Assembly (NCBI GenBank): GCA_964035545.1
Contig: OZ037766.1
Coordinates: 30,106,274-30,170,273, forward strand
Source: Bugula neritina
Taxonomy: Eukaryota > Animalia > Bryozoa
Direction: 5' to 3'
DNA length: 64,000 nucleotides
Under the pieces are notes generated by a model. That model was not told the DNA's origin. It did no database searches and was given only the letters and a program-made list of their open reading frames with translations. The translations under genes were made by a program, and so were the position numbers. This document shows positions 10,419 through 63,378 of this stretch, piece by piece (position 1 is the stretch's first letter; the number at the start of each line of letters is the position of its first letter).

Positions 10419-11745
10419 ATGAGAATTTGGATTCTGATAGCACTTGTGGTGAGCGTAGGAGTTGTGTTTATATCTTCACAAAATCAAGCGAGCTTTTCAT
10501 CTGGACTATCTCTATGTAAGTTCTAAAGAAACAATCTTAATCTGGACAGAGGCAATCACAAAAACTAAATATGTATTTTCCGCTAATTTTTGTGAAATTT
10601 GTAATATGATTGTTTCAATTTAGCATATGCATTTGATCAACACTTCAAACTGTTTAGTTTTTAATAAAAAATAAGTTAGGAACCCAAATAATTGTAGGCC
10701 TACTAATTTTACTCAGGCCATTTTGGTTATTTTATTAGATTTTAAATGAAAATGGCACAGGCAATAACGACACAGGTAAAAATGGCACACTGATGTTAAA
10801 CTTTCCCAAACCCCAAACCGTTATCCCAAACTCAAATCCCGGTACGAAGCCATCAAACTTTCATATGGAAAGTGCGTCATTTTCATCTGCTTTTTCATCT
10901 GCGTTATCATTACCTGTGTCATTTTACCAAACACCATGTTACTAGCATTAACTGTGTACCTTAAATTGTGATTCGATATTCGATAGGCTATTTGAAAAAA
11001 CTAGTCAAAGTGAAAGTTGTTTTTAAAATAACAAAATAAGTTTTGATACTGGTGACCAAACTTTTTTTTCTCTGAATATTTAAATAAGAAATTTCAAATT
11101 TCAATTATTTACTGCATTTCATTGTTATGGCCCAAATTTATTTGTTTTCTTTCAGATTGTCAAGACTGCTTACATACTCGTAGTCAAGCATGTCTTCGTC
11201 GTCTAGAAAATAATAGGAGAGGTAAAAGTAGTAGAAAAGCCAGAAGAAAAGGCAGAAAAAGTATAAAAAAAGGAAGTAGAAGTAGTAGAAAGAAAGGGGG
11301 CAGATCTGCAAGGAGAAATAGCAGAAGACAACAAAAGAGAGATGACAGAAGAGCTAGAAGAAGAGGTCTTGGGAACAGAGTTCAACTCTGCAATGTAGAA
11401 GCAGGACAGCTCTGTGTTACTTTTTGCCAGCTGCCTACCTCAGCAACTACACCATTTCCAATTACTCCAGCACCAATCACTGCAGCACCATTCACACCAC
11501 CCCCATTTATGCTACCTGTCATTACACCAGCTCCTATTACACCAGCTCCAGTCATCGCTGCACCACCAACTCCCGCAACAACCTCCACAACAACCTCTGC
11601 ACTAACCCCAGCACCAACGCCTTCACCAACCCCCGCACCACCCCAAGCCCCAACTCCAGCACCAACCACCACAACAACCACCACAACAACCACCACAACA
11701 ACCACCACAACAACCTCTGCACCTGGTCCAAAGGGAAAAAGATGA
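10419..11745 (+). CDS. Secreted 6-Cys / polybasic loop / Pro-Thr tail protein, copy G1 (228 aa, intact)
   Basis: Exon 10419-10515 MRIWILIALVVSVGVVFISSQNQASFSSGLSL (signal-peptide-like). Phase-1 intron gtaag...ttcag. Exon 11156-11745 CQDCLHTRSQAC-(basic 65 aa)-CNVEAGQLCVTFC-Pro/Thr-GPKGKR*. AATAAA at 11915-11920. The same exon structure recurs in paralogues. Confidence 0.9.
10745..10935. mobile_element. Short non-autonomous repeat in the G1 intron, shared with the copy psi4 intron (~40110-40285)
   Basis: AAAATGGCACAGG-type subrepeats on the left and inverted CCTGTGTCATTTTACC on the right; homologous block in the psi4 intron. Confidence 0.45.
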
Positions 11746-12269
11746 TAATAAAAAATGTGTTTGAAACCGTAGCATCTGTGCAGTTGGCTGCATGTATTAA
11801 ATTATTTTGACCGTTTGATTTCTTTTATGTTTAGCAAATTAACATGTTTTTTCTGAAACTATGATGATTTGAAAAATTTTGATGTCTATACTGAATTTGC
11901 AGTTGTAGCTATCAAATAAATTTTATTGTTTTATTTACAACTGCACAAGCTAAATTATATTCCTTTTTTACTATAACGCACTTTATAAGAATATTCATGA
12001 GCAACATCATCATTTGTTAAACATTTCTAACTAAAATAGTCAATTTCAGAATTCAAAAATTTCACAATTACTTTACACTCTATATAATATATTGTCCAGC
12101 CACAATTAATTTCCATGCATCTGTTACGCAGTGTCAAAGCTTTTAGAAGTAAGTTGTATATTCTTTAATTTGCTGCTATATTTTGTGTTGAGCTGCAATA
12201 ATATAAATTATATTTAGTTTGTGTAGTATGATTGTACTGATAGAGCACTAGATAGCAACTGACAACCAA

Positions 12270-15200
12270 CCCCACTAACAATTTACATTTATATCACATT
12301 CGAAAAAACGTTTATTAAAATATGTTTAAATGTCGACACCTTTTTTACTGCATATAATAGAATATTTAGGAAAAGCATTTTTGCCAAAACATTTCACAAA
12401 TGTTGAGTTGCATTAAGTTGCATGTAGATGTGTTTTATACAACTTTGGTAAAAAGTTGTGATTCAACATTATTTAAATGTTTAAATTTTAATGTATCTCT
12501 TTGTCTCACACAACGTTTAGGCAAAACGTTTTCTGCAAACCATTTTACCAACGTTTCATAAACAAGTCATACAAACACTGCTATAATGTAGCTTTGATAA
12601 CATTTTTATAATTTGTAAACCAACGTTAAGTTGAATGTTGAAATGTAAATGTAATTTAGCTTTTTTATCCAAATCGTTCTATAAACAACTTTTCATAAAT
12701 CTTATTATAATATGTTGTGTAAACTCTATGCAGCATTGCAAATATAGGTTATTATAACCATATGGCAAGGTTTACATAACCATTGCTATATGAAAGTATC
12801 TATATAGCAGTAAAATATTTTAAAAGTTTTGTATTGTTATTTATCAAAAGGACAAATTCATACGTGGAGAAAGGACAATTCCTCATTTCTTCTTCTCTAT
12901 TGTGCATCATAATAAGGTGTATTAACATTTGCAGCAGATCAACTATCGTGATAGTTGACAACCGTCATAGCCAATCAGCGGATTCAGATTTGATACACTA
13001 TAGGCCTCCAATTAGTAATGCATTGGGATGAGTGCTATTGACAAACATCTATATAGTTGATTGTACAAGTTTGTATAACGCGCAGTTGAATAGCAGCATT
13101 GAAGTAGCTAAGTAGTGTTTCTGCTATCAGCAATTATGTAATGTTTTCTTATTTGTGCAGTAGTTACGTATACCTGTGCATTTTTTGTATAATAAACTCT
13201 TTTTTACTTTAACTTGGCAATATTGCATTAGCTCTAAATAACCCGTAATTGATGAAAGCGCAAATTCACAACAATATTATACAAGTGAGGCTTTTATATT
13301 GGATGTGTGTTCATAACTTTATTGTTTAAAAATGAAGAACAATAATTACAAACAATGATTATTACTAAAAAAACATGTGTTACCTAAATTGAAGACATAT
13401 TTGTCAAATTAAATGACCTAAAATGAGTTACATATAAAATAAATGTGGCAATGAGCAGATAAATAAATTTTTATTGGAGCTAATGCAACAATTATAGATA
13501 GCAACAGGTCTTAAGAAGTACAGCAAAAACTTAAACAGAAAACAATTTAAACCAATTATTTTAAAATGTTGCTTTAAAACATATATAGCTATTTAGTGAA
13601 GTCAGCAAAACATACTTTTCTGTATATATATAAGCAAGTAAACGAAATAACACCAATTATCATATATATAGAACGCTACTCCCTTTATATCCAAAGCTGA
13701 ACATTAGCAACGAGCTTTATTACCACTTTGGAGATTTAAAGTTATTTTAGCTCTTTCTATTAAGCTTCATCTAAAATTGAGGCCTAACTAAATGTTTTAA
13801 AATATAAGTAGGTTTCTGAAAATTGTGAATTCAGTCTGCTCATTCTTTTCCTCAAAACATATACTTAAAACTTCAAGGTCTTGTTCTTTACAGTAAGATA
13901 GTGACCACCTACAAAGCACCAAGAATACACACTAGAAACAAAAAACATACAATGTAAATGTATATAAGCTGTGGTGAACTGAAGTGGTGTTTCAGAATAA
14001 GCTGTGAAAATGGGTGGGCAACTTCAAATTTCTGTATATTCCCCTATAAATATGACAAACAATTTGATATATTCATAAATGGGTAGGCAACTTTGAGCTT
14101 ATGTACATTTCACTATAAAAATGACAAACAAGGGTGCAGATCATAAATGGGTGACAACTTCAAGTTTATGCAAATTCTGCAATAAAGATGGCAAACAAGA
14201 CAGCTTTGATAGTGGGTGGGTAACTTCAATTTTAACTAGATTTTACTATAAAAGTGACTAACAAGAAAGTTGAAATATGGGTGGGCAACTTCAACTTTAT
14301 AAAAATTTTGCCATAAAGATGACAAACAATAAAATTAGGAAATAGGTGGGCAACTTCAATTTTATGTACATTTCACTATCAAGATAGCAAACAAGAAAGT
14401 TAGAAAATGGGTGGGCAACTTCAATTTTATGTACATTTCACTATCAAGATGGCATACAAGACTGTTCAGAGGTTGGTGGGTACTTTATATTTGATGTAAA
14501 TTTTATTTTTGAAATGACAAACAATTTGACACGTTTATAAATGGGTGGGCAACTTCAATGTTGTGTACATTCAATTATAAAAATGACCAACAAGAGTGTT
14601 CGGAATTTGGTGTACAAACTAGACTTTATGTAAATTTTACTATAAAGAAGATAAACAAGAAATTTCGAACATAGTGTAATGGATTTTCATCCCCTATCGT
14701 TTTGAAAAATTCTAGTTGCTATCACTGAAAAATACCCTGCCTTTTGTTCTCTCTCACAAAGTTACAATAGGTAGGCAACTTCACGCTATAAAGATGATTA
14801 ACAATAATATCTGATCATAAGTGGGTGACCTCAACTTTATACACACTGCTCTATAAAAATGACAAACAAATAAAAACTTGTGAAAATAGGTGGGCAATTT
14901 CTAATTCATGTACATTTTACTATAAAAATAACCAACAAGGAAATGGAAAAATGGGTAGGCAACTTTCAGTTAAATTCCAATAAATTACTTTAAACTGCGA
15001 AATATTGCACTTTTCAAACAATTATTGATATAATGTAGATTTTGACTTAACTTCGTACATAACACCATTAGTGCATAGCTTATATGTTTGCATTTAAACA
15101 AAATTTTAAACTTTTTAAAAAAAATTGATAACTATTATAATGCAAAATTTAAATTAATTAAATATGTTTCTTTCCAACATTACAAGCTTCAAATAATCAG

Positions 15201-15560
15201 AATTGGGCTCACCAACCTATCAATAAGTTCACATAGTGGCACCTGTGCATTTACTCATATACAGTGTGTAAATTACAGATAACTTCATTGGTATGACTAT
15301 AAATTTACCTGAATAGCCAAGTACATGGGAATAGCTAAACTTCTATCATTCAATACAAGCAAGGTATAGATAGATTCTTCTTGACGCATGGAGCCTGGAT
15401 GTTTCTCATATCAAGTAACCACAGATGTGAAAATGGCCTAAGGGAAATAAGAAAATATGCACAGACTAAACTAATAATTAAAATAGGCTATAACAAACTA
15501 TTTTCTGACAAAAAAGGAATATTTTGTAAAAAGCTAGAATGGTAAGTGTAACGGGAAGGG
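12270..15560 (+). repeat. Segmental duplicate A (paralogue at ~34864-38250), AACGTT-rich 5' part plus 60-bp minisatellite
   Basis: Both copies begin CCCCACTAACAATTTACATT and are colinear for over 3 kb. Copy A has an extra ~460 bp at about 12815-13278. Confidence 0.85.
14005..14970 (+). repeat. Minisatellite, ~60-bp diverged units
   Basis: Recurrent AAATGGGTGGGCAACTTCAATTTTATGTACATTTCACTATAAAGATGACAAACAAG units, roughly 15 copies. Confidence 0.9.
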
Positions 15561-16654: not shown

Positions 16655-17640
16655 TATGTTGGTATGAAAATATTTTGCTATTCATACATGATTGGTTAAG
16701 TATACAATTGTAGACGATATCACAATATGTTGAAATTATATAAAACTAACTAACAATTTACCAACATTCAATTAGTGAAATATTTTATCTGTTATATCAT
16801 ATGTGTATATATACAGTCAAGGGAGACTGACATAATACACTGAGCTTCAACTACCACTTTGCTTTTGCGACAGTCACTTAATACAAGACAGTGCATTGAA
16901 GCTAATGAATCTGGATTAGTGTAGGACAGATAATAACAGTTAATCTCGTTATTTATGTTATAGGGATGGCTGAGGCTGAAATAATAGTAAATTATTTATA
17001 ACGCAAGCTCTGAAATCAATCATGGACAGTGGGTGGCAGCCAAGAACAGCAACTATCTCGTAAAAATTTTTTGAAATGCCAATTTTGACTATTTAAATGT
17101 TTTAAATGACAAAATTGGGCTTTGCTTTTAGAAAGATTGTGCTTTTTGACAAACCTTGAGATATCATTTGCTCTGCTAATTATACGTTTAACATATGAGG
17201 AGAGGGGCATGCACCCTATAAAACATTCACAATTATATGTGTGTAACTGCAGAATTAATGTAAATTTCTGGTGTCATCAAACAGATATTCTACATTTTAG
17301 TGTAAAACAGCATGTCTTCTGGCCCTAATTAAATTTAACCAGAAAAAAACGTGTTCAAGATGTTTTTTGGACCTGCCTATAATAAAAAAAAAATTATCTG
17401 CTGAGCCGTTCTCAACATGCAGTCACTTTATTGAAATATAAAATTTTTCAATGAATCATTAACCCCTACCCCTATTTCAAGGTATCCTGGAAAAGATGGT
17501 ATAATGTATCCAACAATATATTTCAGCCATTATAATAACACTAATGTACGTACTCCATCTCTATATCCTAACAGAGATGCATATAAAATATGTTGAGATT
17601 TTATACTGTGCAAGTCTACTATATATTAATTCACTTCATA
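16655..17640 (+). repeat. Duplicated block; inverted copy at 22634-23635, partial direct copy at ~33383-33850
   Basis: Near-identical reverse-complement match. The mirrored short ORFs 17016-17210(-) and 23044-23310(+) reflect the duplication. Confidence 0.9.
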
Positions 17641-18230
17641 TAGAGTAGAGTAGAATAGAGAAGAGAAGGGTAGAGTAGAGCAGGGCAGGGCAGGGCAGGG
17701 CAGGGCAGGGCAGGGCAGGGCAGGGCAGGGCAGGGCAGGGCAGGGCAGGGCAGGGCAGGGCAGGGCAGGGCAGGGCAGGGCAGGGCAGGGCAGGGCAGGG
17801 CAGGGCAGGGCAGGGCAGGGCAGGGCAGGGCAGGGCAGGGCAGGGCAGGGCAGGGCAGGGCAGGGCAGGGCAGGGCAGGGCAGGGCAGGGCAGGGCAGGG
17901 CAGGGCAGGGCAGGGCAGGGCAGGGCAGGGCAGGGCAGGGCAGGGCAGGGCAGGGCAGGGCAGGGCAGGGCAGGGCAGGGCAGGGCAGGGCAGGGCAGGG
18001 CAGGGCAGGGCAGGGCAGGGCAGGGCAGGGCAGGGCAGGGCCGGGCAGGGCAGGGCAGGGCAGGGCAGGGCAGGGCAGGGCAGGGCAGGGCAGGGCAGGG
18101 TAGGGTAGGGAAGGGAAGGGAAGGGTAGGGTAGGGTAGGGTAGGGTAGGGTAGGGTAGGGTAGGGAAGGGAAGGGAAGGGTAGGGTAGGGTAGAGTAGAG
18201 TAGAGAGGAGTAGAGTAGGGTAGAGTAGGG
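17641..18230 (+). repeat. Pentanucleotide satellite (CAGGG/TAGGG/TAGAG)n
   Basis: Directly visible tandem pentamers. Confidence 0.98.
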
Positions 18231-18442
18231 TAATGGTAACGGTTGGTCACGGTTGGTTACATAATAAGAAATGTTGGTCTGATATATTATAACAGTAAAG
18301 ATGAAATACAACCTGTGAGTCTCTTGGGCCTAGCAATTTACTCAACTGGCAATATTGTCACTGTTTCAAAATTAATCTCACTGAAGCATATAAAGTCAAG
18401 ATTAAGGATCTACAGGTTTAATTACTTTGAGTATATTTGGAG

Positions 18443-18641: not shown

Positions 18642-19793
18642 ATGAGAACTTGGATCTTGATAGCATTTGTATTGAGTGTAGCAGTGGTGTTTGTCTCTTC
18701 ACAAAACCAAGCAGACTTTTCCTCTGCAGTATCTCTGTGTAAGTAATTTAATTCTTTATGATTATATGATATTTTTGTAAATTTTGTTATTATATTGCAG
18801 TAAAGTGATAGTCAAGTGATTGGGCAAATTTTTAAACTTTTTCAGACAAAAGAAATTGGAAAAAAGAATTATCTGAATGTCTTAATTGAAGCTAATTGTT
18901 TTGACTTTTCTAGCATTAGGAAATATGTCTGCTACTTTGTATACTGTTGATAAAAATATAGCAAACTAAATTTTGATACCTATTACGTAACTGCATTTTA
19001 TAGAGGTCAAAAGGAAATTATACTTTACGTCATTTCTATGGCCAAATTTTGGTTTGTTATTTCAGCATGCCAAGCTTGTTTACGTTCTCGTACTCAAGCA
19101 TGCCTTCGGCGCTTAGGAGCAGGTAGAGGAGGCAAGGGTGGTAAAGGGAAAAAGAGAAAAAATAAAAGAGGAGACAGGAGAGGCAAGAGCAAGAGAGGCA
19201 ATAAAAAAGGGGGCAAGAGAAATAAAAGAAAAGGGGGTAAAGATGGAAAGAGAAGTGGGAGGAAGGGAAGAGGAAGGGGTGGCAGAAAAAATAGAGAAAG
19301 AAATCTTAGAAACAGATCAGCTCGAATTTGCAATATAGAAGCCCAGCGACTCTGTATTAGCTTTTGTCAGCCACCAGCCCCAGCACCTACACAACCACCA
19401 ATCACACCAGCTCCAATTCGTGCAGCACGAATTACACCAGCACCAATTATGATACAACTTATTACACAAGCACCTATTAGACCAGCACGAATTACACTAC
19501 CAACAATTACTGCTGCACCAACCACCACTACTACTAAACAAGTCATCGTCGCACGATTCCCTGGCGCAATCATCTTCGCACCAGCACCCACTACAACAAC
19601 AACCACTACAACAACAACACCAACTACAACAACAACACCCACTACAACAACAACACCCACTACAACAACAACACCCACTACAACAACAACACCCACTACA
19701 ACAACAACACCCACTACAACAACAACACCCACTACAACAACAACACCCACTACAACAACAACACCCACTACAACAACACCCTTTACAAAATAA
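18642..19793 (+). CDS. Secreted 6-Cys / polybasic loop / Pro-Thr tail protein, copy G2 (274 aa, intact)
   Basis: Exon 18642-18738 MRTWILIAFVLSVAVVFVSSQNQADFSSAVSL. Phase-1 GT-AG intron. Exon 19066-19793 CQACLRSRTQAC-(basic 75 aa)-CNIEAQRLCISFC-...(PTTTTT)n. AATAAA at 19959-19964. Confidence 0.9.
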
Positions 19794-20261
19794 ACAAAAA
19801 CTACATTTGAAACATTAGCTTCTCTGCAATTAATCGGCTGTATTTTAGATTGTCTACCAATTAGCTATTTTTTTTGTTGACAAAACAATTTTTGTTGCGA
19901 AATTTAGGTAGTTTAAAAGGTATTGGTGTTATAATGCTGTTTCTCCTTTTGACTATCAAATAAAGTCTACTGGTTATTTAAAATCCTAAGTTAATATATT
20001 TTATGCTTGTTACTAGACATTTAAGGAATTCGCAACATCAGAACTTGGCAAACATTTCTAACAATACTTACCATTCCAAAAACTACAAAAAAAAATTTGA
20101 AAAAGTTATCAATTTCAGATGAAGCATGCATGTGGCTAAATTTTCAATTTGACTTCAGGAGTTTAGTATACAAACAACTTTTATATTATAGCTGAAAGCC
20201 AATTGCTAACATAAATTGTGATGTGGGAAAATATTTTTTATCTAAAATAATTGGATTAGAT

Positions 20262-20627
20262 TAGAGAAGAATAGGGTAGAAAAGAGTAGAGTAGAGTAAA
20301 GTAGAGTAGAGTAGAGTAGAGTAGAGTAGAGTAGAGTAGAGTAGAGTAGAGTAGAGTAGAGTAGAGTAGAGTAGAGTAGAGTAGAGTAGAGTAGAGTAGA
20401 GTAGAGTAGAGTAGAGTAGAGTAGAGTAGAGTAGAGTAGAGTAGAGTAGAGTAGAGTAGAGTAGAGTGGAGTGGAGTGGAGTGGAGTAGAGTGGAGTGGA
20501 GTGGAGTGGAGTGGAGTGGAGTGGAGTGGAGTGGAGTAGGGTAGGGTAGGGTAGGGTAGGGTAGGGTAGGGTAGGGTAGGGTAGGGGAGGGTAGGGTAGG
20601 GTAGGGTAGGGTAGGGAAGGGTAGAGT
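20262..20627 (+). repeat. Pentanucleotide satellite (TAGAG/TGGAG/TAGGG)n
   Basis: Directly visible. Confidence 0.98.
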
Positions 20628-20712
20628 ATAACTTAAGGTAATAAATAACAATTGTTCTAATCATGTTTTATAGCTATGAGTGAGAAAATTTGTGCTGTGA
20701 GGCCCTACACCT

Positions 20713-21995
20713 TGATTGATTGATTTTATTTCTATCACTAACCTGATATATGTTGTGCCAAAAAAAGGTGTTGAATACCGATGCCCCTGATATTAAAAAT
20801 GATAACAGTGTAACATACATGGCTTAAAAATAGGAATAAAAAGTCTCTGAGGCTGGAAATCAATTGACAAAAATTATTATACAAGTTTATTTAGCTTGAG
20901 TGCTGCCTGGCGTATAAAAGAATCTCTGCCCCATGCATGTGCTTCTGTATTTAATGGTACGATATCGTCCTGATGGGTTCTTTTCAAGAAAGTCCTTTAG
21001 AAAATGATTGTCATCATGTATATATTGCAGTAGCAAGATTTTAGTTCTGACATCTATTAGATTGTCGATATCCCCAAGATCTTTGATGCCTAGTTTGAGT
21101 GCCTCTTTAAAAAAGTGTCGGAGTTGCTTTTTATCTTTAGCATACAGGGAGATGTAAAGAATGGGCAGACAGTAAGTAAGAAGGGAGATAATAAAACTTT
21201 TAAATAGCATACTAGCCAGGGTGGTTGAACAAAGGTAAACAAAATTTCTAACAATATATAACATTCTTTGACTAGCTTTTGTTGCCACAGAGTTAATGTG
21301 CTCTTCAAAACGAAGTTTGTTGTCTATATCCATACCCCTACATATTTCACATTGTCACTAAAACTGATACTAACTTTATTCAAAATCATAGCAGGGGTGT
21401 CTGGCTAAATCCTGTTAGTGGAAAACAATATTTCTTGGGTCTTACTTGGGTTCAACAAAAGGGCTAAGGAATTACATTCATTTGATATTCTATCTACTTC
21501 AAAAAAATAATTACTCAAAGCAGACTCATCAGAAATACAACCTATTACACAAGTGTCGTCTGCATATTTTAAAATAGTGACATTATATACTAGTTTGAGA
21601 TGTAATTCCATCAGTGTAAACAGAAAACAAAAGAGGGCTTAACACAGAACCTTGGGGAGTGCCTGTAAAATTTGTGACAATAGGCTAAGACATATAGTGC
21701 CATCAACTAATGTTCTTTGAACTCGGCCACTGAGGAAACTGGTTATTCATCCTGTTACATTACAATCCAGATGTTGTAGCTTAGGTATAAGATGACTGAC
21801 GTTTATAGTATTAAAAGCTAAAGAGAAATCTAGGAACAGGCATGGTGAGTAATTACAATTAGCTTGTCCGTCAATAAAATTAGTAACAGTCGTAGCGAGG
21901 CAGAGCACTGCATCCTGGGTTGAACGGTGTGAGCGATAAGCGAACTGAAATTTATCCAAGGGAGTGTGGTTAGAGATGTAGTTCTTCATAAGTAT
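20713..21995 (-). mobile_element. 5'-truncated, degenerate non-LTR retrotransposon (Rex1/Babar-like, CR1/L2 group), RT region
   Basis: Broken RT motifs LDKFQFAYRSHRSTQDA, LFLDFSLAFNTI, GTPQGSVLSP and LKYADDT. The 3' end is AATAAA followed by ATCA repeats. The paralogous site at ~25530-25560 is empty. Confidence 0.88.
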
Positions 21996-22217
21996 CTCTA
22001 TAAATATTTATTATATAGACTATTCTGTAATTAGACTATAAGTTAACTAACTATATATATAGCACTACTATATATCTTAAAAAACAACACCACCTGTAAA
22101 AAAATTTCTTGCACTAGACTGGGCTTGAGGACTACACTTCACCTGGGCTAGGGTTTGTGCCCGTTCAACTACTGTTTTTAATTACTAATTCACTTTCAAA
22201 GCTAGCTTAACTCAGCT

Positions 22218-22633
22218 ACCCTACTCTACCGTACCCTATTCTACTCTTCCCTATTTTACCCTACTCTACTCTACCCTACCCTAGTCTACCCTACCCCACT
22301 CTACTCTACCCTACCCTACTCTACCCCACTCTACTCTACTCTGCTCTACTCCACTCTACTCTACTCTGCTCTGCTCTGCTCTGCCCTGCCCTGCCCTGCC
22401 CTGCCCTGCCCTGCCCTGCCCTGCCCTGCCCTGCCCTACCCTACCCTACCCTACCCTACCCTACTCTACCCTACTCTACTCTACCCTACTCTACCCTACT
22501 CTACTCTACCCTACTCTACTCTACTCTACTCTTCTCTACCCTACTCTACCCTACTCTACTCTACTCTACTCTACTCTACTCTATCCTACCCTTCTCTTCT
22601 CTACCCTTCTCTTCTCTATTCTACTCTACTCTA
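22218..22633 (-). repeat. Pentanucleotide satellite, inverted orientation
   Basis: (CTACC/CTACT/CTGCC)n, the reverse complement of the other pentamer blocks. Confidence 0.97.
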
Positions 22634-24255
22634 TATGAAGTGAATTAATATATAGTAGACTTACACAGTATAAAATTTTAACATATTTTATATGCATCTC
22701 TGTTAGGATATAGAGTTGGAGTACGTATATTAGTGTTATTATAATGGCTGAAATATATTGTTGGATATATTATACCATCTTTTCCAGGGTACCTTGAAGT
22801 AGGGGTAGGGGTTAATGATTCATTGAAAAATTTTATATTTCAATAAACTGACTGCATGTTGAGAACGGCTCAGCAAATAATTTTTTTTTTATTATAGGCA
22901 GGTCCAAAAAACATCTTGAACACGTTTTTTCTGGTTAAATTTAATTAGGGTCAGAAGACATGCTGTTTTACACTAAAATGTAGAATATCTGTATGATGAC
23001 GCATTTACATTAATTCTGCGCAGCTACACGCATATAATTGTGAATGCTTTATATAGGTTACATGCCCCTTTCCTCATATGTTAAACTTATTAGCAGAGCA
23101 AATGATATTTTAAGGTTTGTCAAAAAGCACAATCTTTCTAAAAGCAAAGCCCAATTTTGTCATTTAAAACTTTTAAATAGTCAAAATTTGCGTTTCAAAA
23201 GAATTTTACAAAGTTTGCTGTTTTTGGCTGCCACCCACTGGCCATGCATGATTCATTTCAGAGCTTGCATAAATAATTTACCATTATTTCAGCCTCAGAC
23301 ATTCCTATAACATAAATAACTGTAAGCGCATGCTTTAGATGATTAACTGTTATTATCTGTCCTCCACTAATCCAGATTCATTAGCTTCAATGCAAAGTCT
23401 TGTATTAAGTGCATGACTGTCGCAAAAGCAAAATGGTAATTGAAGCTCAGTATATTATGATATTATGTCAGTCTCCCTTGACTGTGCATGTATACACATA
23501 TATAGTAGATAAAATATTTTACTTCAATCTTGGTAGATTGTTAGTAATTTTTATATAATTTCAACTTGTAATATATTCTACAATTGTATACCTAACCAAT
23601 TACGTATGAATAGCAAATTATTCTCATACAAACATTTTCAACAGAAATATTTACTAAACTGTATGTGGGGGAAAGTTATTATAGACATGGAATGCATATA
23701 CAATACATGGTGCATAAAGATTCAAAAATAATATGTTCAGGGCATTACCAGTATCTAAATAAAGTGCTTCTTTCCCCAAAGATATTGGTCAGTGAAATGG
23801 TGTAGTGACCAAAGTTTAACTGAGGTGATTATTATTTACATAATTCAAATGCTATCAGTCAGAGTGTTATATAGACAGTTTATAATACACAAATAAAAAT
23901 ATGCAAATATATACTACTTGAAATTCCTAATTGGTTGTATTGTAATTATTTCTAAAGTATGCGTGCAGGACACATATATACTGTGTGCGTGTGTCTACTG
24001 TATTATACCAGTTGTCGTATTTGATTTATTGACGCTTGATTAAAGATTTCAATTAGGTTCATCTTAATAAAACTACAACACTATAAATTATCAACAAAAA
24101 GAAAGAGAATCTGAGTATAAAATAACATAATGGAATACAGAATGCCTGGTGGTTCTGTTCATAGTAAGATACTGACTACTAATTTTCATCTTATACTTGC
24201 TTGCTATAATAAATAACTATAAATAGCTATAATAGCTATAAACAGTAGCTAGCTA

Positions 24256-25442
24256 GTAAAGTAGAGAAGAGTAGGGTAGAGCAGAGTAGGGTAGGGTAGA
24301 GTAGAGTAGAGTAGAGTAGGGTAGGGTAGGGTAGAGTAGGGTAGGGTAGGGTAGAATAGGGAAGAATATATTATAGTAGGGTAGGGTACAGTAGGGTAGG
24401 GTAGAGTAAAGTGGGGTAGGGTGGAGTAGGGTAGGGTAAGGAAGAGTAGAGTAGAGTAGGGAAGAGTAGAGTAGAGTATAGAGTAGAGGTGGGTAGGGTA
24501 GGGTAGGGTAGGGTAGGGTAGGGTAGGGTAGGGTAGAGTAGGGTAGAGTAGAGTAGAGTAGAGTAGAGTAGAGTAGGGAAGGGTAGAGTAGGGTAGGGTA
24601 GAGTAGAGTAGAGCGGAGTAGGGTAGAGTAGAGTAGAGTAGAGTGGGGTAGGGTAGATCAGGGTAGGGTACTAGAGAAAAGTACAGTAGAGTAGAGTAGG
24701 GAAGAGTACAGTAGAGTAGGGTAGGGAAGAGTACAGTAGAGTAGAGTAGGGAAGAGTAGAGTATAGAGTAGAGGTGGGTAGGGTAGAGTAGGGTAGGGTA
24801 GGGTAGGGTAGAGTAGGGTAGAGTATGGAGTAGAGTAGAGTAGAAAAAAGTAGAGTAGCGTAGGGTAGAGTAGAGCGGAGTAGAGTAGGGTAGAGTAGAG
24901 TAGAGTGGGGTAGGGTAGAGTAGGGTAGAGAAGAGTAGAGTAGAGTAGAGTAGGGAAGAGTAGAGTAGAGTAGATTGGGGTAGGGTAGAGTAGGGTAGGG
25001 TAGGGTAGGGTAGAGTAGGGTAGAGTATGGAGTAGAGCAGAGTAGAGATGAGTAGAGTAGGGTAGGGTAGAATAGGGTAGAGTAGAGTAGAGTAGGGTAG
25101 TGTAGAGTAGGGTAGTGTAGGGTATGGTAGAGTAGAGCGGAGTAGAGTAGGGTAGAGTTGAGTAGCGTAGAGTGGGGTAGGGTAGAGTAGGGTATGGTAG
25201 AGTAGAGCGGAGTAGAGTAGGGTAGAGTTGAGTAGCGTAGAGTGGGGTAGGGTAGAGTAGGGTAGGGTAGAGAAGAGTACAGTAGAGTAGAGTAGGGAAG
25301 AGTAGAGTAGAGTGTAGAGTAGAGGTGGGTAGGGTAGAGTAGGGTAGGGTAGGGTAGAGTAGGGTAGAGTAGGGTAGAGTATGGAGTAGAGTAGAGTAGA
25401 GAAGAGTAGAGTAGCGTAGGGTAGTGTAGGGTAGGGTAGAGT
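24256..25442 (+). repeat. Degenerate pentanucleotide satellite (TAGGG/TAGAG)n with higher-order repeats
   Basis: Directly visible. Confidence 0.97.
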
Positions 25443-26788
25443 GTAACTTGAGGTAATAAATAACAATTAATCTAATCATGTTATATATTAAAGTTTTATG
25501 GCTATGACTGAGAAAATTTGTGCTGTGAGGCCCTACACCTAATGGTTTTTTATTATATAGGCTATTCTGAAATTAGACTATAAGTTATGTAACTATACAT
25601 ATAGCACCACTATGTATCTTAATATTACAACACCACCTGTAAAGTTTTTTCTTGCACCAGACTGGGCTTGAGTACTGCACTTCACCTGGGCTAGGGTTTG
25701 TGCTTGTTCCACCACTGTTTTTGATTACTAACTCACTTTCAAAGCTAGCTTAACTCAGCTGTATAGCTAGCTACTGTTAGCTATTATAACTATTTATAGG
25801 TATTTATTATAGCAAGCAAGTAGATGAAAATTAGTAATTAGTATCTTACTATGAACAGAACCACAAAGTATTTTTATACCATCATGTTATTCTATACTCA
25901 AGTTTTGTTTCTTTTTGTTGATAATATTTTATAGTGTTGTATATAGTTTCAATAAGAAATGATCAATTTCTTGTGTAATGTTTTGTAATGCTATCAGTCC
26001 ATCATTTATTATATAATAGTTAACATTGCTTTATAGGTGTCATGGTTGTTTGGTTGGTTACGGTTGATAACTGTTGGTAATGGTTGGTTGGTTATATAAG
26101 AAAGGTTGGTCTGTTATATAATAACAGTAAAGATGAAATTCAACCTGCGAAGTTGCGTTTATACCTCTGATGAAAGGTATAAAGGTATGAAGGTATAAAG
26201 GTATAAAGGCAACTTGAGTCTCTTGGGCCTAGTAATTCACTCAACTGGCAGACTGTGAAGTGAAAACTTCATACCACCTATGCATAGACATTATAAATGC
26301 TCAGAATAATTTGGCTGTATTTTTAATTTGTTTTAAGTAACAGTTATTTTTTATTTTATTATTTTTATAAAGAGTAATCTTTTATGGTTAACACCAGCAT
26401 GCTATTAGATTGGCAATGAGCAGCTAGTTAACTGACAATTGTATTATCAAGCAGTTACTATAGATATTATAGTTTTCATGTTCGAAGAGCTGATACTCTT
26501 CAAGCAACTTTCTGGATGAGATGGGAACGTCAAACAACAAATTGTAGCTTGTTTTTTTAATAGTGTGTCATAGCTGCTGGTCATTACTTCATATCTCATA
26601 TTTTGTTATAATTACTTTAGGCTACTATAATACCATGCAACAGCTGAAGTCATAAAGTTATTCAAATTTTGTATAGTTTCAATAACTTTATATATAGCCT
26701 ACTGCCAATTGAATTTTTTGCTATTCTCATTATAATGAAACTTTATCAATAACAAAAATTTTATTTTTCATTTGCCAGAATGATAATC

Positions 26789-27515: not shown

Positions 27516-27931
27516 CATAGAAAAGTTAAAAGAGAAATTAGAAATAGTAAAGGGGGCATATCTGGGAGGAGAAGTAGCAGAAGGCAACAAAATAGAGATG
27601 ACAGAAGAGCTAGAAGAAGAGGTCTTGGGAACAGAATTTAAATCTGCAATATAGAAGCAGGAAAACTTTCTGCTATTTTTTGCCAGCCGCCAACCTCAGC
27701 ACCTACACCATTTTCAATCACCCCAGCATCAATCACTGCAGCACCATTCACATCATCGCCATTTATGCTACCTTTCATTACAATAGCACTCATTACACCA
27801 CCACCAATTACGTCAGCTCCCCTTACACCAGCCCCTACAGCACTGCAGCTCCAGTTACGACTGCACCAAAAACTACTGCAACAGCAACTGCTGAACCAAC
27901 TCTAGCGCACCAAATAAAAAAATGCATTTGA
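27516..27931 (+). pseudogene. Copy psi3 of the secreted 6-Cys family (3' part of exon 2 only)
   Basis: Aligns to G1 (RDDRRARRRGLGNRI*ICNIEAGKLSAIFCQ). TAA at 27639-27641, one Cys lost and a frameshift. The 3' UTR and flank are homologous to G1 out to ~28460. Confidence 0.88.
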
Positions 27932-29745: not shown

Positions 29746-32290
<2,545 letters not shown>

Positions 32291-32292: not shown

Positions 32293-33382
<1,090 letters not shown>

Positions 33383-39787: not shown

Positions 39788-41768
39788 ATAGCACTTGTTG
39801 TGAGCGTAGGAGTTGTGTTTGTATCTTCACAAAATTAACTGAGCTTTTCATCTGGACTATCTCTATGTAAGTTTTAAAAATACTATTTTCCAGACAAAGG
39901 CAATCACAAAAACTAAGTCCCTATTTTTTTGCTAATCTTTATAAAGTTTGTAATACGATTGTTGCAATTAATACCATCATATATATAGCAGCTACATTTG
40001 ATGAAAACTGTTTAATTTTTTATAAGCAAAACAAGTTCGAAAACCAAATAATTGTAGGCTAATAATTTTACTCAAGCTGATTTTTGTCATCTTAGTTACT
40101 GGATTGTAATTGAAAATAACACAGACAACATTGACACAGGTACAAATAGCACACTGATGTTATACCTTCCCAAACCCAAAACTCAGACTCTTATCCCAAA
40201 CTCAAACCCTCATTACAAACCCAAAATTCTTCATTAGGAAAATATGTCTTTATTACCTGTTTTTCCATTTATTATATATACCTGCGTTATTTTACAGAAC
40301 ACCATGTTACTGCTAGCATCAGTGTAGTTTCTATGATTTGATATTCATTTGGCTTTTTGTAAAAACTAGTCAAAATGACAATTATTTTTAAAATATTAAC
40401 AACCTGCATTGTGATAGTGATGATCACACTTCATTTTTTCTCTAAATATTTAAATAAAAACTTTTCAAAGTTCATAAACTATTTACTACTTTTCATTGTT
40501 ATATTGCCCGAATTCAATTGTTTTTTTAGCTTGCCAAGACTGCTTACGTACTTGTACTCAAGCATATGTCTTCGTCGTTTAGAAACTAGGAAGGGAGGCA
40601 AAACTGGGAGAGCAGTTAGAGGAAGAGACAAAAAGAGAAAGAAAACAAAAAGCGGGAAAAAAAGAACAAAAAAGGTGGAAAGAAAAAAGGCAAAAAAAGA
40701 GAAAAACAAAAGGGCAAAAAAGTTGGAAGAAAAGGAAGCAGAAGTAGTGGGAAAAAAGGGAGCAGATCGGATAAGAGAAAAAGAAGGAAAAGTAGCAAAA
40801 AGCAACAAAGAACTAGAAAAACTAAAAGAAGTCTTGGAAACAGAGCTCAACTCTGCAATGCAGAGGGTCAACAACTCTGTGCTATTTTTTGTCAGCCACC
40901 AACCACGGCAGCAACGCCATTTCCAATCATCCCAGCACCAATCCCTCCAGCACCATTTACATCACTATCATTTTTAATACCTTTGATTACAATAGCACCC
41001 ACTACATCAGCACCAATTGCACCAGCTCCTATTACAACAGCAACAATTACTTCTGCACCAACCACTGCTGCAACAATTGCACCAGCTCCCCTCATACGAG
41101 CTACTACTACACCAACACCAACAACCACTGCTGCACCAATCATTATTAGACAAGGTTTTGCTGGAGCAATTTTTGCTGGACCCGCACCAACCCCCGCACC
41201 AACCCCTGCACCAACTCCCGCGCCAACCCCTGCACCAACTCCCGCGCCAACCCCCGCACCAACTCCCGCGCCAACCCCTGCACCAACCCCCGCACCAACC
41301 CCCGCACCAACCCCCGCACCAACTCCCGCGCCAACCCCTGCACCAACCCCCGCACCAACCCCCGCACCAACCCCCGCACCAACCCTCGCACCAACCCCCG
41401 CACCAACCCCCGCACCAACTCCCGCACCAACCCCCGCACCAACTCCCGCACCAACCCCCGCACCAACTCCCGCACCAACCCCCGCACCAACCCCCGCACC
41501 AACCCCCGCACCAACCCCCGCACCAACTCCCGCACCAACCCCTGCACCAACCCCCGCACCAACCCCCGCACCAACCCCCGCACCAACTCCCGCACCAACC
41601 CCCGCACCAACCCCCGCACCAACCCCCGCACCAACCCCCGCACCAACTCCCGCACCAACCCCTGCACCAACCCCCGCACCAACCCCCGCACCAACCCCCG
41701 CACCAACTCCCGCACCAACCCCCGCACCAACCCCGCACCAACTCCTGCGCCGGGAAAAAGAAGATAAA
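39788..41768 (+). pseudogene. Copy psi4 of the secreted 6-Cys family with expanded (PTPA)n tail
   Basis: Exon 1 remnant 39788-39866 lacks the ATG and has TAA at 39836-38. Exon 2 from 40530 has a 2-nt insertion (GCATATGT vs GCATGT) and further frameshifts. CQDC and [13 protein letters not shown] are retained. The ancestral end reads APGKRR*. Confidence 0.88.
41181..41750 (+). repeat. 12-bp coding minisatellite (CCCGCACCAACC)n = (PAPT)n
   Basis: About 47 near-perfect units. Confidence 0.97.
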
Positions 41769-42695
41769 CAAAACTATTATTAAAAGCAGTAATCCTTGCA
41801 TGAGCAGCTGGGTGTATTTCAGTTTTTTTCAAATGATAGTTTTTACAATTGATAAACAATATTTTTTTGCAAAACTTCGTCGAGTTAACAAGTTTTAGTG
41901 CTAATACTGAATTTGTATCTGTACCTAACAAATAAAGTTCACTTGTTATTTAACATCACATTTTAATTTCATTTTTTTTCACTTTTCACTACACTTTAAG
42001 AATGAGCGACATCACAATTTGTTAAACATTTCCAACTAAAAGTGTTCTCTCAATGCTCGAAAAATTTCTTTTGAAAGCTTTACTTGTTTAAAATAGAACA
42101 AATGGCTAAGTTTTTAAATTTGACTATAGCAATGTTGAATCTAAATAGTTTCTATGATACAATTGATGGCCAATTATACTGACACAAATTGTAATGCTAA
42201 TCTTGAATTGAAATAAATTTTCATCTAAATTAGCTTTAGTATCTATAGTATGAAATTAAAAGAATACTTATTGCTGCAAAGCTTCAATTATGAAGATTTG
42301 TTTTATATCTATACACACCTATTTATGTGTCACATTTTTGCAATTTATTGCATTTAAGTTTTTTTTGGTTTCACATGACACATGCAGCATAACATTAATA
42401 TTTAAGAAGCTAAATCAGTGTTTTATGACGGTTTCTGGGCACAAAAAGTATACGTTTATTAATGCACTGACGTATAAAGTTTCATAAAACTTTAGTTGAA
42501 GACATTCTAATAACTTTTAAATGTCTAAAGAGATGGTAATTAAATTGAATGTAGCTTAGCATGCAGTTGTAGAATTTATCCAACTGCTAATTCTATTTTT
42601 AACTAACTGCTGAAGTTTCTACATTCTTATTTCATATGTTATAAAACATTTGTTATTTTAATACAAAGTTTATAATACAGTGTCAAAACTTTTAC

Positions 42696-53047: not shown

Positions 53048-53427
<380 letters not shown>

Positions 53428-54197: not shown

Positions 54198-54295
54198 ACA
54201 GAGAGATTGAAAAACAAAAAGCTGCTCTGCTTTTCTGAAAATACAAATACTACTGCTATGCTCAATACAAATGCCATCAGAATTCCAATTCTTAT
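54198..54295 (-). pseudogene. Copy psi6: orphan signal-peptide exon of the secreted family, inverted
   Basis: Minus strand CTCAAG-ATA(ex ATG)-AGAATTGGAATTCTGATGGCATTTGTATTGAGC...CTCTGT|gtaag. It is 98 nt, 1 nt longer than intact exons. No exon 2 was seen downstream. Confidence 0.8.
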
Positions 54296-54299
54296 CTTG

Positions 54300-57280: not shown

Positions 57281-57486
<206 letters not shown>

Positions 57487-59558: not shown

Positions 59559-60276
59559 ATGAGAACTTGGATCTTGATAGCATTTGTATTGAGTGTTATA
59601 GCAGTCGTATTTGTCTCTTAGCAAAACCAAGCAGACTTTTCCTCTGCAGTATCTCTGCGTAAGTTATAGCTTAACTATTTATAATCATATGCTACTTTGG
59701 TAAAATTTGTTATTAGATTGCCGTAAAGTGATAGTCAAGCGATTGGTCAAACTTCTATCTTTTTTTTAAGCAAAAGAAATTAAAAAACAAAATTATCTGA
59801 ATGTTTTAATTGAAGCTATTTGCTTTGATTTTTCTAGCATTAGCAAATTTTTTTGCTGTTTTGTATTTATTGGCTTATTGAAAAAAATATATTCAAAATT
59901 ATGATTACTAATAAAAATAATATAGTAAACTAAATTTTGATATCTATGATGGAACTGCATTTAGAGGCCAAAAGTTAATTATATACTTCACATCATTTCT
60001 ATGACCAAAGTTCGATTTTTCTTTTCAGCATGCCAAGCCTGTCTACGCACTCGTACTCAAGCATGTCTTCAGCGCTTAGGAGGAGGTAGGGGAGGTAGAG
60101 GAGGTAGAGGTGGGAGGAGAGGAAATAGAAGGGGGGGGCAGAACAGGTAAAAGAAGAGAGGGCAGATCTGGAAGGAGAAGTAGCCGAAGACAACAAAGAA
60201 AAGATGGAAGAAAAGCTAGAAGAAGAGGTCTTGTGAACAAAGCTCAAATCTGCAATGCAGAAGCAGGAATACTCTC
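59559..60276 (+). pseudogene. Copy psi7 of the secreted 6-Cys family
   Basis: Exon 59559-59658 has an in-frame TAG at 59619-21. Exon 2 from 60029 has a +1 frameshift in a G run and is truncated after CNAEAGIL, so the tail is missing. Confidence 0.88.
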
Positions 60277-61059
60277 TAGAATTAAGTCTTCAACAACATT
60301 TTCTAAAAATATGTGGGTTAGTAGAGTTATAAATAATACTTCCTACTTAATGTTTTGATTTATTACAGATTAAAATGTATATAATCTTTATGGTATAAAA
60401 ATCTCATGAAAGGTATTATTTCATTCTTACAAAAATTAATGTATCTTTGCTAATAATTAAGCTGTCATTTTTATAGATATAGAAATTTAATCAAGTGTAA
60501 AGGTAGCTAAAAATATATCAAAGAGTGGCTTTGGGATACTATGAGGGTTGAAGCTCTGACAATATGAGTTACTGCGGACAACTTTTCTATTCTAATTGTT
60601 GCTGTATACATTTGAAAACGGAAAAATTTTACAAAAATAAAAACAGGGCAATAACATGCCGTGTACTAATTGAGACAACAAAGTCATTTATGTTTTAGAA
60701 ATCTACTTTATATATAACTTGTATATACTAAGAGGGTTTTTATTAATTAAAGATTATATGATAAACTATATCAACAAAAAATCTATCTATCATTTCTCCT
60801 TGGAGGTAAGACTTTATTTTTTTCAGATCAAATGAAACAATTAATAATAGTTATCATGCCCTTTTGTAGATCATTTTTACTACAATTCCTATATCAATAC
60901 AGAACTACATATATAAGTACTTCAATTTTCAGATCTGGGTTACTTTAGAATTCAGAGGATAAGACCTTGTCCATTTAAAACAAAAACATAATTAAGATGA
61001 CTGACAGTTCTTCGCTGACATAGTAAATCAAAAAACCTGAAAAATTGCCAATTCACCAA

Positions 61060-61803
61060 TGGATGATGCCGGTGAAACCTTGAAGTCCACTACATATAGA
61101 CCATGCTATAAATCTCATGGGAACCAATTGGTTGGTACTTGTGGATGCATATACCAAATATCCTTGCATTCATCCCACAAGTTCTATGTCAACCAAGGCA
61201 AAAACAGACTCACTGAAAATAAACTTCACTCATTTTGGATGCCCGCAATACCATAGTCACTGACAATAGACCAAGCTTTACATCTGCATGAGGAGTTTAA
61301 AAATTGTGCAAAGACAGAGGAGATAGATACACCTGAGAGGAGCATATTATTACTACCAATGGAGCAGCAGAATGACTATAGTAGAATCTTTCAAGCAACC
61401 ACTAACGAAGTTTGCACCATCATCTAGAGAAGCCCTGAAGGAATTCTAGATGCAATACAGGAAAAGACCCTTGTCTAATGAACTCTCACCAAGCTAAACA
61501 CATAGTGAACGCCAGATCCGAACGAAACTATAGATGCATTACTAACATCACCAGCCCATCTTGATTAAAAAAAAACAAATGCAAGAAAAAAGGAGGATTA
61601 GGAAACTACACAGCTACTGCACTGTAAGCACACATTGCTACGCTCTATAGTGTCTATAAAATTCCGAGGAAAAGGTTAGTTGCATGTGATTGATCTTATG
61701 ATTTTGTTAAAAAGCTTTTTGGAATAATGAGAAGTATGCTTGTGAGCCGGAAATGTTTAGATAGAAAGCAGCCACATTCCATATCTGAACAAGTTTGATT
61801 AAT
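61060..61803 (+). mobile_element. Old insertion, possibly the 3' part of a Penelope-like element (GIY-YIG remnant)
   Basis: Absent from the inverted paralogue near 54695. GCIYQI...KFYVNQGK resembles the GIY-YIG motif. Heavily decayed. Confidence 0.4.
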
Positions 61804-62203
61804 TGCTGAAGAATGAATAGCTATGCTTATCAAAGTTGTACTAAGCTGCAACATCTAATCAGTACTAGTCTATTGACCCCATCATTCCCTTGGAATCAAT
61901 AAATCATACTCACCTGACATATAGCCACAGTTTAAACTTAACGTAATCTTATTCAACCAATTAAAATTGAAATTAAAGACCATAAGTGTAAAAAATTTAT
62001 TGCATAAAAACAGTAATAACCAAAGAAACTACATTAGTTTACTGAGAGACGCAAAGCTTTAAAGTCAAAATTTTTAGGTGTGTAAGTTTGTTTCCTAACG
62101 ACTATTCTTTTTGTAATTTTTATTTATTCATGGATTTACTAAACTCAAAATTTAAATCCATGGGCTTATACTATAATACATATTTATAGAAACAAAACTC
62201 AAG

Positions 62204-63378
62204 ATGAGAGTTTGGATTCTGATAGCATTGATACTGAGCGCAGCAGTAGTGTTGATCTCTTCACAAAACGAAGCAGGTTTTCCCTCTGGAGTCTCTCTTC
62301 GTAAGTTCTTAAGATACAATCCTTTAGACAGAGGTAGTTATATAGCTCCAAAAACTGGCACAGTAATGTAATTGTTATGTTTGTGAACTTTGCTCCTAGA
62401 TTGTAGTAAACAAGTTTTTACAATTGGTAAAATATTTAGCTCAATAGACAAATCAAGTTAAAATTGAATTATCGTAGTAATTTTACTGATCAGTTATTTA
62501 TTTTTAATTTTTGCATGACATCAATTTTTTTTATTTTTTTTTTATTTAATATTTTATTAGTAGAAAACTAGTTGAAATTACAACTATATTGATAAAATAA
62601 ATCACTGAATTTTAATACTTATCAGGAAGTTATATTTGCATCTTCTCAGAGTATGTATTGAAAAACTACTTTCTATTTCAAAAGTTATTCACAAGTCTTA
62701 ATTTCTATGACATGCGTTTCATTTATTATTTTAGCTTGCCAGGCCTGTTTACGTACTCGTACTCAAGCATGTTTTCAGCGTTTAGGAGGTGGTAGGGGTG
62801 GTAGAGGTCGTAGGGGTGACAGAGGTGTCAGGAGAGGAAATAGAAGAGGGGGCAGGAAAGGTAGAAGAGGGGGTAGAAAAGGAGAAAGAAGAGGTAGAAG
62901 AGGGAGCAGAAGAGATAGAAGAAGAAGTAGCAGGAAAGAAGGAAGGAGAAGTAGAAAAGAGGAAAGGAGAAGTCTCAAGATCCAAGCTCAGTTCTGCAAT
63001 GTAGAAGCAGCAACACTTTGTACTAGTCTTTGTCAGCCACCAATTCAAGCACCCACCTTAGCACCAATCACTTCAGCACCAATCACTTCAGCACCAAACA
63101 CACCACCACCAATTATGCTACCTTTAATTACACCACCACCAATTACACCAGCTCCTATTACACCAGCACCAATTGCAGCTGCACCAACCACTGCTGTAAT
63201 AACCAAACCAACGTTAACCACTGCTGCACCAACTGCAGCTGCTCTAACCCCTTCAGCGTTGTTCATACCAGCAGTAGTTGTACTACCACCAACCACAACT
63301 GTACCAACAACCACAACTGTACCAACAACCACAACTGTACTAACAACTACGGTAAACCCAATGTACCAAGGTAAATGA
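62204..63378 (+). CDS. Secreted 6-Cys / polybasic loop / Pro-Thr tail protein, copy G8 (246 aa, intact)
   Basis: Exon 62204-62300 MRVWILIALILSAAVVLISSQNEAGFPSGVSL. Phase-1 intron. Exon 62735-63378 CQACLRTRTQAC-(Arg/Gly-rich 74 aa)-CNVEAATLCTSLC-Pro/Thr-YQGK*. Confidence 0.9.

Follow-up and report, generated by a model that had tools for sequence, protein, structure and literature searches.

What is encoded by a cluster of small two-exon genes on chromosome 2 of the bryozoan Bugula neritina, and whether the products are real proteins with a function, are the questions raised by the locus described here. The stretch that was analyzed (the window) comprises 64,000 nucleotides (nt) of contig OZ037766.1 in assembly GCA_964035545.1, from position 30,106,274 to position 30,170,273 of the forward strand, and is AT-rich and rich in microsatellites. 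Coordinates are given as window positions unless they are prefixed with C2 (chromosome 2 of Bugula neritina) or with an L number. Within the window, three genes designated G1, G2 and G8 look, on sequence grounds, like real and constrained members of a family that is apparently lineage-restricted and so far found only in Bugula neritina. In the reading favored here, which we regard as about evenly balanced, they encode genuine secreted glycoproteins: an alpha-hairpin stapled by disulfides keeps a polycationic loop closed at the end of a mucin stalk, and the loop binds polyanions; secretion, disulfide pairing, glycosylation, ligand and role are all matters that we infer.

By predicted splicing, the three are intact two-exon genes on the forward strand, located at 10419-11745 (G1), 18642-19793 (G2) and 62204-63378 (G8). 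Exon 1 is always 97 nt long, running from the ATG through 32 codons plus one nucleotide into a phase-1 intron (640 nt in G1, 327 nt in G2 and 434 nt in G8) with an invariant GTAAGT donor and a TTTCAG or TTTTAG acceptor. It has the classical form of a signal peptide, in which Met-Arg, a hydrophobic core some 16 residues long (Kyte-Doolittle mean of about 3.0 over 15 amino acids (aa) in every intact gene) and then Ser-Ser-Gln represent the n-, h- and c-regions. Exon 2 encodes, in this order, a Cx2Cx7C motif (N motif), a loop, a Cx7Cx3C motif (C motif) and a tail of 105-141 residues. Lys and Arg (K+R) make up 31 of the 65 loop residues in G1, 37 of 75 in G2 and 34 of 74 in G8, with just 3-6 acidic residues (D+E) and a net charge of +28 to +34. 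In the tails of the intact genes, Pro, Thr, Ser and Ala account for 67-81% of residues and form runs such as T17, (TTTTTP)9 or (PTTTTV)3; with lengths of 105-148 aa and 29-68 Thr, these stalks fall within the definition of mucin-type Pro/Thr/Ser (PTS) regions. No C-terminal hydrophobic anchor is present in the intact genes, and an AATAAA hexamer lies 166-185 nt downstream of the stop codon in each of G1, G2 and G8.

These results bear out exactly what the initial annotation of this DNA had observed, namely three intact spliced-type genes sharing a 97-nt signal-peptide exon and invariant Cys motifs, with a Lys/Arg-rich loop and a Pro/Thr/Ala tail. The gene models and a six-frame regular-expression scan agree on the three genes, a recount of K+R in the loops returns identical values, the tail composition matches the Pro/Thr/Ala tail, and the n-, h- and c-regions of every intact exon 1 match the signal-peptide exon. 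In the window, the Cx2Cx7C...Cx7Cx3C pattern was found by the scan only in G1, G2 and G8, apart from a fourth match that was rejected as an antisense low-complexity artefact. A single-exon gene starting at an intron-internal ATG was likewise discarded, as that codon is in frame in only two of the genes, G2 and G8, and out of frame in G1. A possible acceptor (GTAG, ATAG or GAAG) is located 8-12 nt before the ATG of the G-type genes and, because it sits where the related genes H1 and H2 (described below) have theirs, the G-type genes may possess an additional 5' untranslated region (5'UTR) exon upstream of the ATG.

Constraint was assessed by comparing the gene types, between which the synonymous divergence (dS) is 0.5-1.3. 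The ratio of nonsynonymous to synonymous divergence (dN/dS) is 0.09-0.26 in the N motif, 0.21-0.39 in the C motif, 0.39-0.46 in the stalk and 0.25-0.91 in the loop, whose alignment is uncertain. DNA identity between types reaches 71-85% across exon 1 and both Cys motifs versus 56-69% in the non-coding flanks, and at this divergence all three types retain the frame, the signal peptide, the six Cys residues and the composition. The loop DNA is 76-83% purine, a bias that might on its own yield K, R, G and E. Nevertheless, the frame in use is much richer in K+R and much poorer in D+E than 2000 shuffles of its nucleotides (net charge, P <=0.0005), whereas the other two frames contain acidic residues or stops. 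Because the charge is specific to one frame with respect to both the shuffles and the other frames, positive charge is concluded to be a selected property of the reading frame and no mere consequence of base composition; this, together with the low dN/dS of the Cys motifs, is the reason why G1, G2 and G8 are regarded as real, constrained genes.

What is conserved in the loop, as judged from these comparisons, is composition and not sequence. Length differences among G2-type loops correspond to in-frame repeat units. The loop had been called hypervariable, a description that holds for its length and sequence, both of which vary through in-frame repeat indels; its dN/dS values give no sign of positive selection, however, and its composition is kept.

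A compact gene with the same pair of motifs, H1, is located about 138 kb past the window end (L034:7344-8514; C2:30307617-30308787). As read from sequence, its plan comprises a TATA-like box, what may be a short 5'UTR exon, an acceptor immediately in front of the ATG, and a signal-peptide exon of 91 nt in phase 1 (L034:7604-7694); in the main exon (L034:8210-8514), Cx2Cx7C and Cx7Cx3C are separated by just 10 residues. Beyond these motifs, the chain continues with a short linker of Thr and Pro, one more Cx3C and a cationic tail of 38 residues that is rich in Arg, Gly and Phe and contains 13 K+R and no acidic residues. A second copy, H2 (L045:847-1743), contains a 1-nt deletion that shifts the frame between C1 and C2, and it is probably dead. 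In a profile comparison of the G-type family with H1, the aligned region covers the C motif and runs into the first part of the stalk (E 1.3e-4, probability 54%). Given this alignment, the N motif, the exon phases, the shape of the signal peptide and the chromosomal position, homology between H1 and the G-type family is likely, not proven. If the two are indeed homologous, the clamp would be a compact, roughly 36-residue domain whose turn has been enlarged to give the polycation of the G-type genes, since the turn of H1 measures only 10 residues. The charge, the Cys hairpin and the Thr/Pro linker are found together in both forms.

Structure prediction was applied to both forms. For the G1 head, AlphaFold2 with a 7-sequence alignment predicts two long antiparallel helices (residues 2-32 and 48-90), with predicted local distance difference test (pLDDT) values of 75-85 where the Cys motifs lie, falling to 53-56 mid-loop. 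For H1, it predicts a helix at residues 3-16, a turn and helices at residues 22-32 and 34-41, with pLDDT 70-78 over residues 1-40 and a disordered remainder. The invariant residues (1, 4, 5, 8, 11, 12, 15 and 16 in the N motif; 78, 79, 82, 85, 86 and 90 in the C motif) are spaced as i, i+3/4, i+7, i+10/11 and i+14/15, which corresponds to one helical face per motif. A helical-hairpin clamp is reasonably supported, because the predicted hairpin, the placement of invariant residues on one face and the compact helix-turn-helix of H1 point in the same direction. The antiparallel helical hairpin that had been proposed from the mirrored Cys spacing gains from all three observations, at the moderate confidence that the models allow. 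A Foldseek comparison, suggested at the outset as a check alongside structure prediction, returned nothing significant for the predicted hairpin in the PDB, and fold searches with VIA-align and the ESM Atlas retrieved generic two-helix hairpins only, with Z values no higher than 6.9 and 4.1.

Relatives of the family were sought in several collections, which exclude unannotated bryozoan genomes and may lack records from B. neritina or its near kin, so that the absence of homologs is a limited statement. Pfam contained no match for G1, G2, G8, exon 1, H1 or G2b, and a word-indexed search of 5.8 billion proteins found none for the G8 head or H1. An exhaustive HMMER profile search of 1.84 billion protein representatives gave no acceptable match, its lone match (E 3.9e-4) being rejected as a translated tandem repeat. 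No relative was detected in an ESM Atlas search by features or among JGI metagenome contigs, a PDB sequence search with the family profile and the compact domain gave no match at E up to 10, and looking up the exact product encoded by the G2 open frame also returned none. Literature searches covering the secreted proteins, neuropeptide precursors, mucins and biomineralization of B. neritina revealed nothing resembling the family. The architecture therefore stays as unrecognized as it had first been called, and the hidden Markov model search proposed at that time reveals no homolog in a characterized family.

Within the genome, a search with protein, profile and exon-1 DNA queries places the family only at C2 ~30.117-30.282 Mb, an interval of about 165 kb. 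It contains 15 exon-2-like loci, equivalent to about 2.5 copies of a six-gene unit consisting of G1, G2, a fragment, D, E and G8. The earlier count of three intact genes applies to the window; across the whole locus, 5 of the 15 copies are intact, the other two being G2-type genes (L008, and L009 on the minus strand). Outside the window, two G1-type copies lack exon 1, one of them also having a tail frameshift, and the second G8 copy carries a nonsense codon. From its sequence pattern, the cluster is a birth-and-death family. A haplotig artefact was considered and rejected: the unit copies differ by 3-12% with many indels, and are therefore paralogs rather than uncollapsed haplotypes. The idea that the signal exon is common to other gene families was also rejected, as exon 1 occurs only in this locus.

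Several repeats accompany these units. Long satellites built of (GCAGG)n and (GTAGG)n, in which periods of 10 and 15 nt are apparent, occur between genes (17517-18320, 20190-20720, 22156-22700 and 24249-25480); the same pentanucleotide satellites are present upstream of duplicated G2-type copies and may have mediated duplication of the unit. A C-terminal fragment of a long interspersed nuclear element (LINE) reverse transcriptase at 20887-21333 (-) and an open reading frame (ORF) at 30744-31274 (+), assigned to the Penelope-like-element nuclease type by eye only, both have counterparts in the duplicated units, located at window-equivalent positions 152323 and 88254.

The reading favored here combines these elements into a single molecule. 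Lineage-restricted B. neritina genes, amplified in tandem on chromosome 2, would encode products of about 230-275 residues in four parts, beginning with a cleavable signal peptide. Next would come a six-Cys domain of two amphipathic helices, packed antiparallel and probably disulfide-stapled, which encloses a 65-88-residue loop that is probably disordered, is derived from the hairpin turn and carries a net charge of +28 to +39. The last part would be a mucin-type Pro/Thr/Ala stalk, probably heavily O-glycosylated. By joining both ends of the polycation, the clamp would present it as a closed loop at the end of a stalk that is stiff, hydrated and resistant to proteases. Such a loop could bind polyanions electrostatically, with microbial surfaces, acidic or sulfated glycans and mucins, and extracellular nucleic acid as candidates. 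The surface mucus or the cuticle coat would be the likeliest site, and defense or antifouling the most plausible role.

Several points weigh against this reading. Ten of the 15 copies are broken, indicating that the cluster is partly decaying, and divergence within types is too low for constraint to be measured. RNA evidence was sought and not found: the sole public sequencing run containing the locus is genomic, and its contigs span the intron with no spliced joint. The structural models are of moderate confidence, with a mean pLDDT of 69 and a predicted template modeling score (pTM) of 0.40 for the G1 head (7 sequences), and 59 and 0.35, respectively, for H1 (2 sequences). Each loop contains 14-17 dibasic pairs and 1-3 RX[K/R]R sites, because of which secretory-pathway convertases might excise it. 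Moreover, the evidence does not discriminate between defense and adhesion, matrix or other roles.

A more ambitious version of the same idea is offered only tentatively, as we think it rather unlikely. According to this, the family would represent a new class of animal extracellular effector, a stapled alpha-hairpin whose turn has been inflated to a polycationic loop on a mucin stalk, acting as a mucus-anchored protamine-like antimicrobial, a symbiont-control factor or a self-coacervating block-polyampholyte glue; H1 would then record the origin of the loop from a 10-residue turn.

Among the competing explanations, the one that survives best, although we consider it unlikely, is that of an adhesive or cuticle-matrix protein. 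The product would be a block polyampholyte, with a cationic loop and a possibly sulfated glycan stalk, that undergoes complex coacervation with itself or with acidic partners in larval or rhizoid cement or in the zooid wall. A polycation joined to a glycosylated block suits such a design, and tandem amplification with repeat-driven fast evolution is usual in structural secretions. Short collagen-like secreted ORFs, with Gly-Pro-Pro/Gly-X-Y runs and in some cases following Cys-containing segments, precede the first base of the window by 16-38 kb (L035-L037; C2:30.068-30.090 Mb) and suggest a neighborhood of secreted structural genes. However, gene neighbors are weak evidence, expression in an adhesive gland and a partner are only hypothetical, and the loops are devoid of Tyr/3,4-dihydroxyphenylalanine (DOPA)-type and aromatic residues, a mild argument against a classical marine glue.

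It is less likely still that the genes encode a processed precursor, in which furin-like convertases and carboxypeptidases remove the basic loop in the manner of the insulin C-peptide and leave a two-chain disulfide hairpin on a stalk as the active part, for example a signal or pheromone. The dibasic pairs and RX[K/R]R sites of each loop would serve this purpose, and H1 shows that the hairpin works as a loopless domain. Small, helical, disulfide-stapled water-borne signals do occur in other lophotrochozoans, attractin of Aplysia providing a precedent. A discarded spacer is nevertheless disfavored, because net positive charge is selected in the frame used and the composition is conserved across a dS of about 1. 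In addition, H1 has its own cationic Arg/Gly/Phe tail, so that the charge travels with the family.

That the locus has no function at all, being composed of unexpressed, decaying young duplicates whose purine-rich and Pro/Thr-coding tracts stay open by chance, is in our judgment very unlikely. The broken majority of copies, the finding that the only public run containing the locus is genomic, and low-complexity tracts open in several frames are what such a view would predict. Against it stand the Cys-motif dN/dS of 0.09-0.39 between types at a dS of 0.5-1.3, the frame-specific charge with stops in the other frames, and the conservation of the signal exon, splice sites and poly(A) signals. Most improbable of all is a biomineralization matrix protein, whose basic block would organize carbonate or an acidic matrix in the zooid wall, which is lightly calcified: a secreted, basic, low-complexity and tandemly duplicated family does recall by analogy the lysine-rich matrix proteins (KRMP) of pearl oysters, but a Gly/Tyr block, an acidic block and a chitin-binding domain are all missing and B. 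neritina is weakly calcified.

The coordinates of the intact genes and of the decayed copies in the window are collected in Table 1.

Table 1. Exons, domains and decayed copies of the gene family in the window
Feature	Position	Strand	Remarks
G1 exon 1, signal peptide	10419..10515	+	97 nt, phase 1, GTAAGT; n-region MR; 15-residue Kyte-Doolittle mean 2.98; SSQ c-region
G1 exon 2	11156..11745	+	whole exon including stop at 11743-11745
G1 N motif	11158-11193	+	
G1 polycationic loop	11194-11388	+	65 aa, net +28
G1 C motif	11389-11427	+	
G1 Pro/Thr/Ala stalk	11428-11742	+	
G1 candidate polyadenylation signal AATAAA	11915..11920	+	170 nt past the stop
G2 exon 1, signal peptide	18642..18738	+	97 nt
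G2 exon 2	19066..19793	+	Cys clamp 19068-19367; 75-aa loop, net +34; stalk with nine TTTTTP repeats
Decayed G1-like exon-2 fragment	27528..27846	+	5'-truncated, N motif missing; in-frame stop; Cys codon changed to Ser
Copy D exon-1 remnant	39788..39866	+	first 18 nt, including the ATG, not conserved
Copy D exon 2	40530..41783	+	first Cys motif gone; frameshift before the C motif; tail grown to >60 APTP repeats
Orphan exon-1 relic	54198..54295	-	ATA in place of the ATG; a (CA)n run follows, with no exon 2
Copy E exon 1	59559..59657	+	3-nt insertion, in-frame TAG
Copy E exon 2	60029..60273	+	C5 changed to Ser; homology stops past the C motif; stalk absent
G8 exon 1, signal peptide	62204..62300	+	97 nt
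G8 exon 2	62735..63378	+	clamp 62737-63033; 74-aa Arg/Gly-rich loop, net +28; Pro/Thr/Ala/Ile stalk

With regard to the wider assembly, the total length is 216,009,554 bases, of which chromosome 2 contributes 33,575,671, and gaps are written as 200 N. One such scaffold gap lies immediately before the window (C2:30106074-30106273), and the surroundings of the cluster on its left are not contiguous. The Darwin Tree of Life note on tzBugNeri2 gives 216.00 Mb for the genome, 33.58 Mb for chromosome 2 and a mitochondrial genome of 15.25 kb with 29% GC (PMC11480708). The mitochondrial contig measures 15,248 bases with 29.2% GC; almost all predicted tRNA genes and most long ORFs are on one strand, and the code is the invertebrate one, with AGA at conserved Ser positions, ATA as Met, AAA as Lys and TGA as Trp, which rules out a cnidarian, flatworm or tunicate source. 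A COX1 ORF at C17:12213-13505 (L041) contains zero TGA codons versus nine in the mitochondrial copy, and is probably bacterial, derived from a symbiont or from a contaminant contig. Nuclear copies of mitochondrial DNA are present on C6, C4, C73 and C214. Within the window, hammerhead-like cores (CTGATGA, a short GC helix and GAAAC) were observed at 31880-31903 (-), 32475-32498 (+) and 53181-53205 (-), in repeated elements beside (TA)n tracts; Rfam recognized no hammerhead in the three cores, either at its gathering threshold or with E values up to 1. No arthropod cuticle-protein family was found in the B. neritina genome, and an arthropod source was rejected on that ground.

Orphan secreted Cys-rich and mucin families are common in invertebrate genomes, and to our knowledge the secreted proteins of bryozoans are almost unstudied. 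B. neritina is a major fouling organism and the host of a bryostatin-producing symbiont. If the genes are expressed, they would provide a natural example of a domain turn enlarged to a functional low-complexity loop, with the ancestral-type H1 nearby for comparison, as well as candidates for antifouling, antimicrobial or wet-adhesive materials. If they are not, the locus would be one more decaying orphan cluster.

Comparison with known systems places the parts of these proteins in context. Plant alpha-hairpinins are defense peptides of the form CX3C-Xn-CX3C (PMC7191063, PMC11591084). Like the predicted Bugula products, they are small, secreted helix-loop-helix molecules whose antiparallel helices are stapled by disulfides, and they are often cationic and antimicrobial. 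In contrast to the six Cys of the Bugula family, arranged as Cx2Cx7C and Cx7Cx3C, they have four with CX3C spacing; they are of plant origin, have a short turn and no mucin stalk, and share no sequence similarity with the Bugula family. At the structural level, residues 3-39 of the H1 model match the hairpinin-like leader of the walnut vicilin Jug r 2 (Z 3.3, root-mean-square deviation 2.4 A over 37 residues), a weak resemblance of the generic hairpin kind. AlphaFold2 predicts a helix-turn-helix with pLDDT 70-85 over the motifs, and structural matches to it are generic only.

A lophotrochozoan parallel is offered by Aplysia attractin, a secreted water-borne pheromone with two antiparallel helices and six Cys residues in nested I-VI/II-V/III-IV disulfides, the very topology that the initial annotation had proposed for the Bugula clamp. 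The Cys spacing differs, however, the Bugula family lacks the attractin heptapeptide, and attractin itself has neither a polycationic loop nor a stalk; no attractin-type similarity emerged among PDB sequences with the profile or the compact domain at E up to 10. Mirror-spaced Cys pairs also staple an antiparallel alpha-hairpin in the twin CX9C (CHCH) and twin CX3C (small Tim) proteins, which lack a signal peptide and undergo oxidation in the mitochondrial intermembrane space. The Bugula family differs from these in its spacing, in the signal-peptide exon of its intact genes and in giving no Pfam match.

An insulin-like or neuropeptide precursor was considered and rejected, given the wrong Cys pattern, inter-basic pieces that are too short and the lack of a Pfam match. 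In insulin and relaxin, a B chain with Cx11C and an A chain with CCx3Cx8C flank an excised C-peptide, unlike the Cys pattern of the Bugula family. The six insulin-like precursors described for B. neritina follow the classical B-C-A plan (PMC4990251).

As for the individual blocks, protamines and marine adhesive polycations such as sandcastle-worm cement and the flatworm cohesive protein resemble the loop in their high Lys/Arg with Gly/Ser content, low complexity and presumed electrostatic action. Protamines, however, are nuclear and lack a signal peptide; the adhesive proteins lack both the Cys clamp and the mucin stalk. No homology to polycations of either kind was detected by the word-indexed or the HMMER search. 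Lubricin (PRG4) and other mucin-like glycoproteins with a basic glycosaminoglycan-binding block have the same overall plan, with a Cys-rich head, a basic segment that binds polyanions and Pro/Thr-rich O-glycosylated repeats; the Bugula proteins differ in having no somatomedin-B or hemopexin domains, in being about ten times smaller and in placing the basic segment within the Cys domain. If expressed, the genes would thus combine three known building blocks in a way that has no described counterpart. The family is new and apparently lineage-restricted, composed of parts of known kinds (the stapled hairpin, the disordered stretch of polycation and the mucin-type stalk) in an arrangement of its own that has not been described before.

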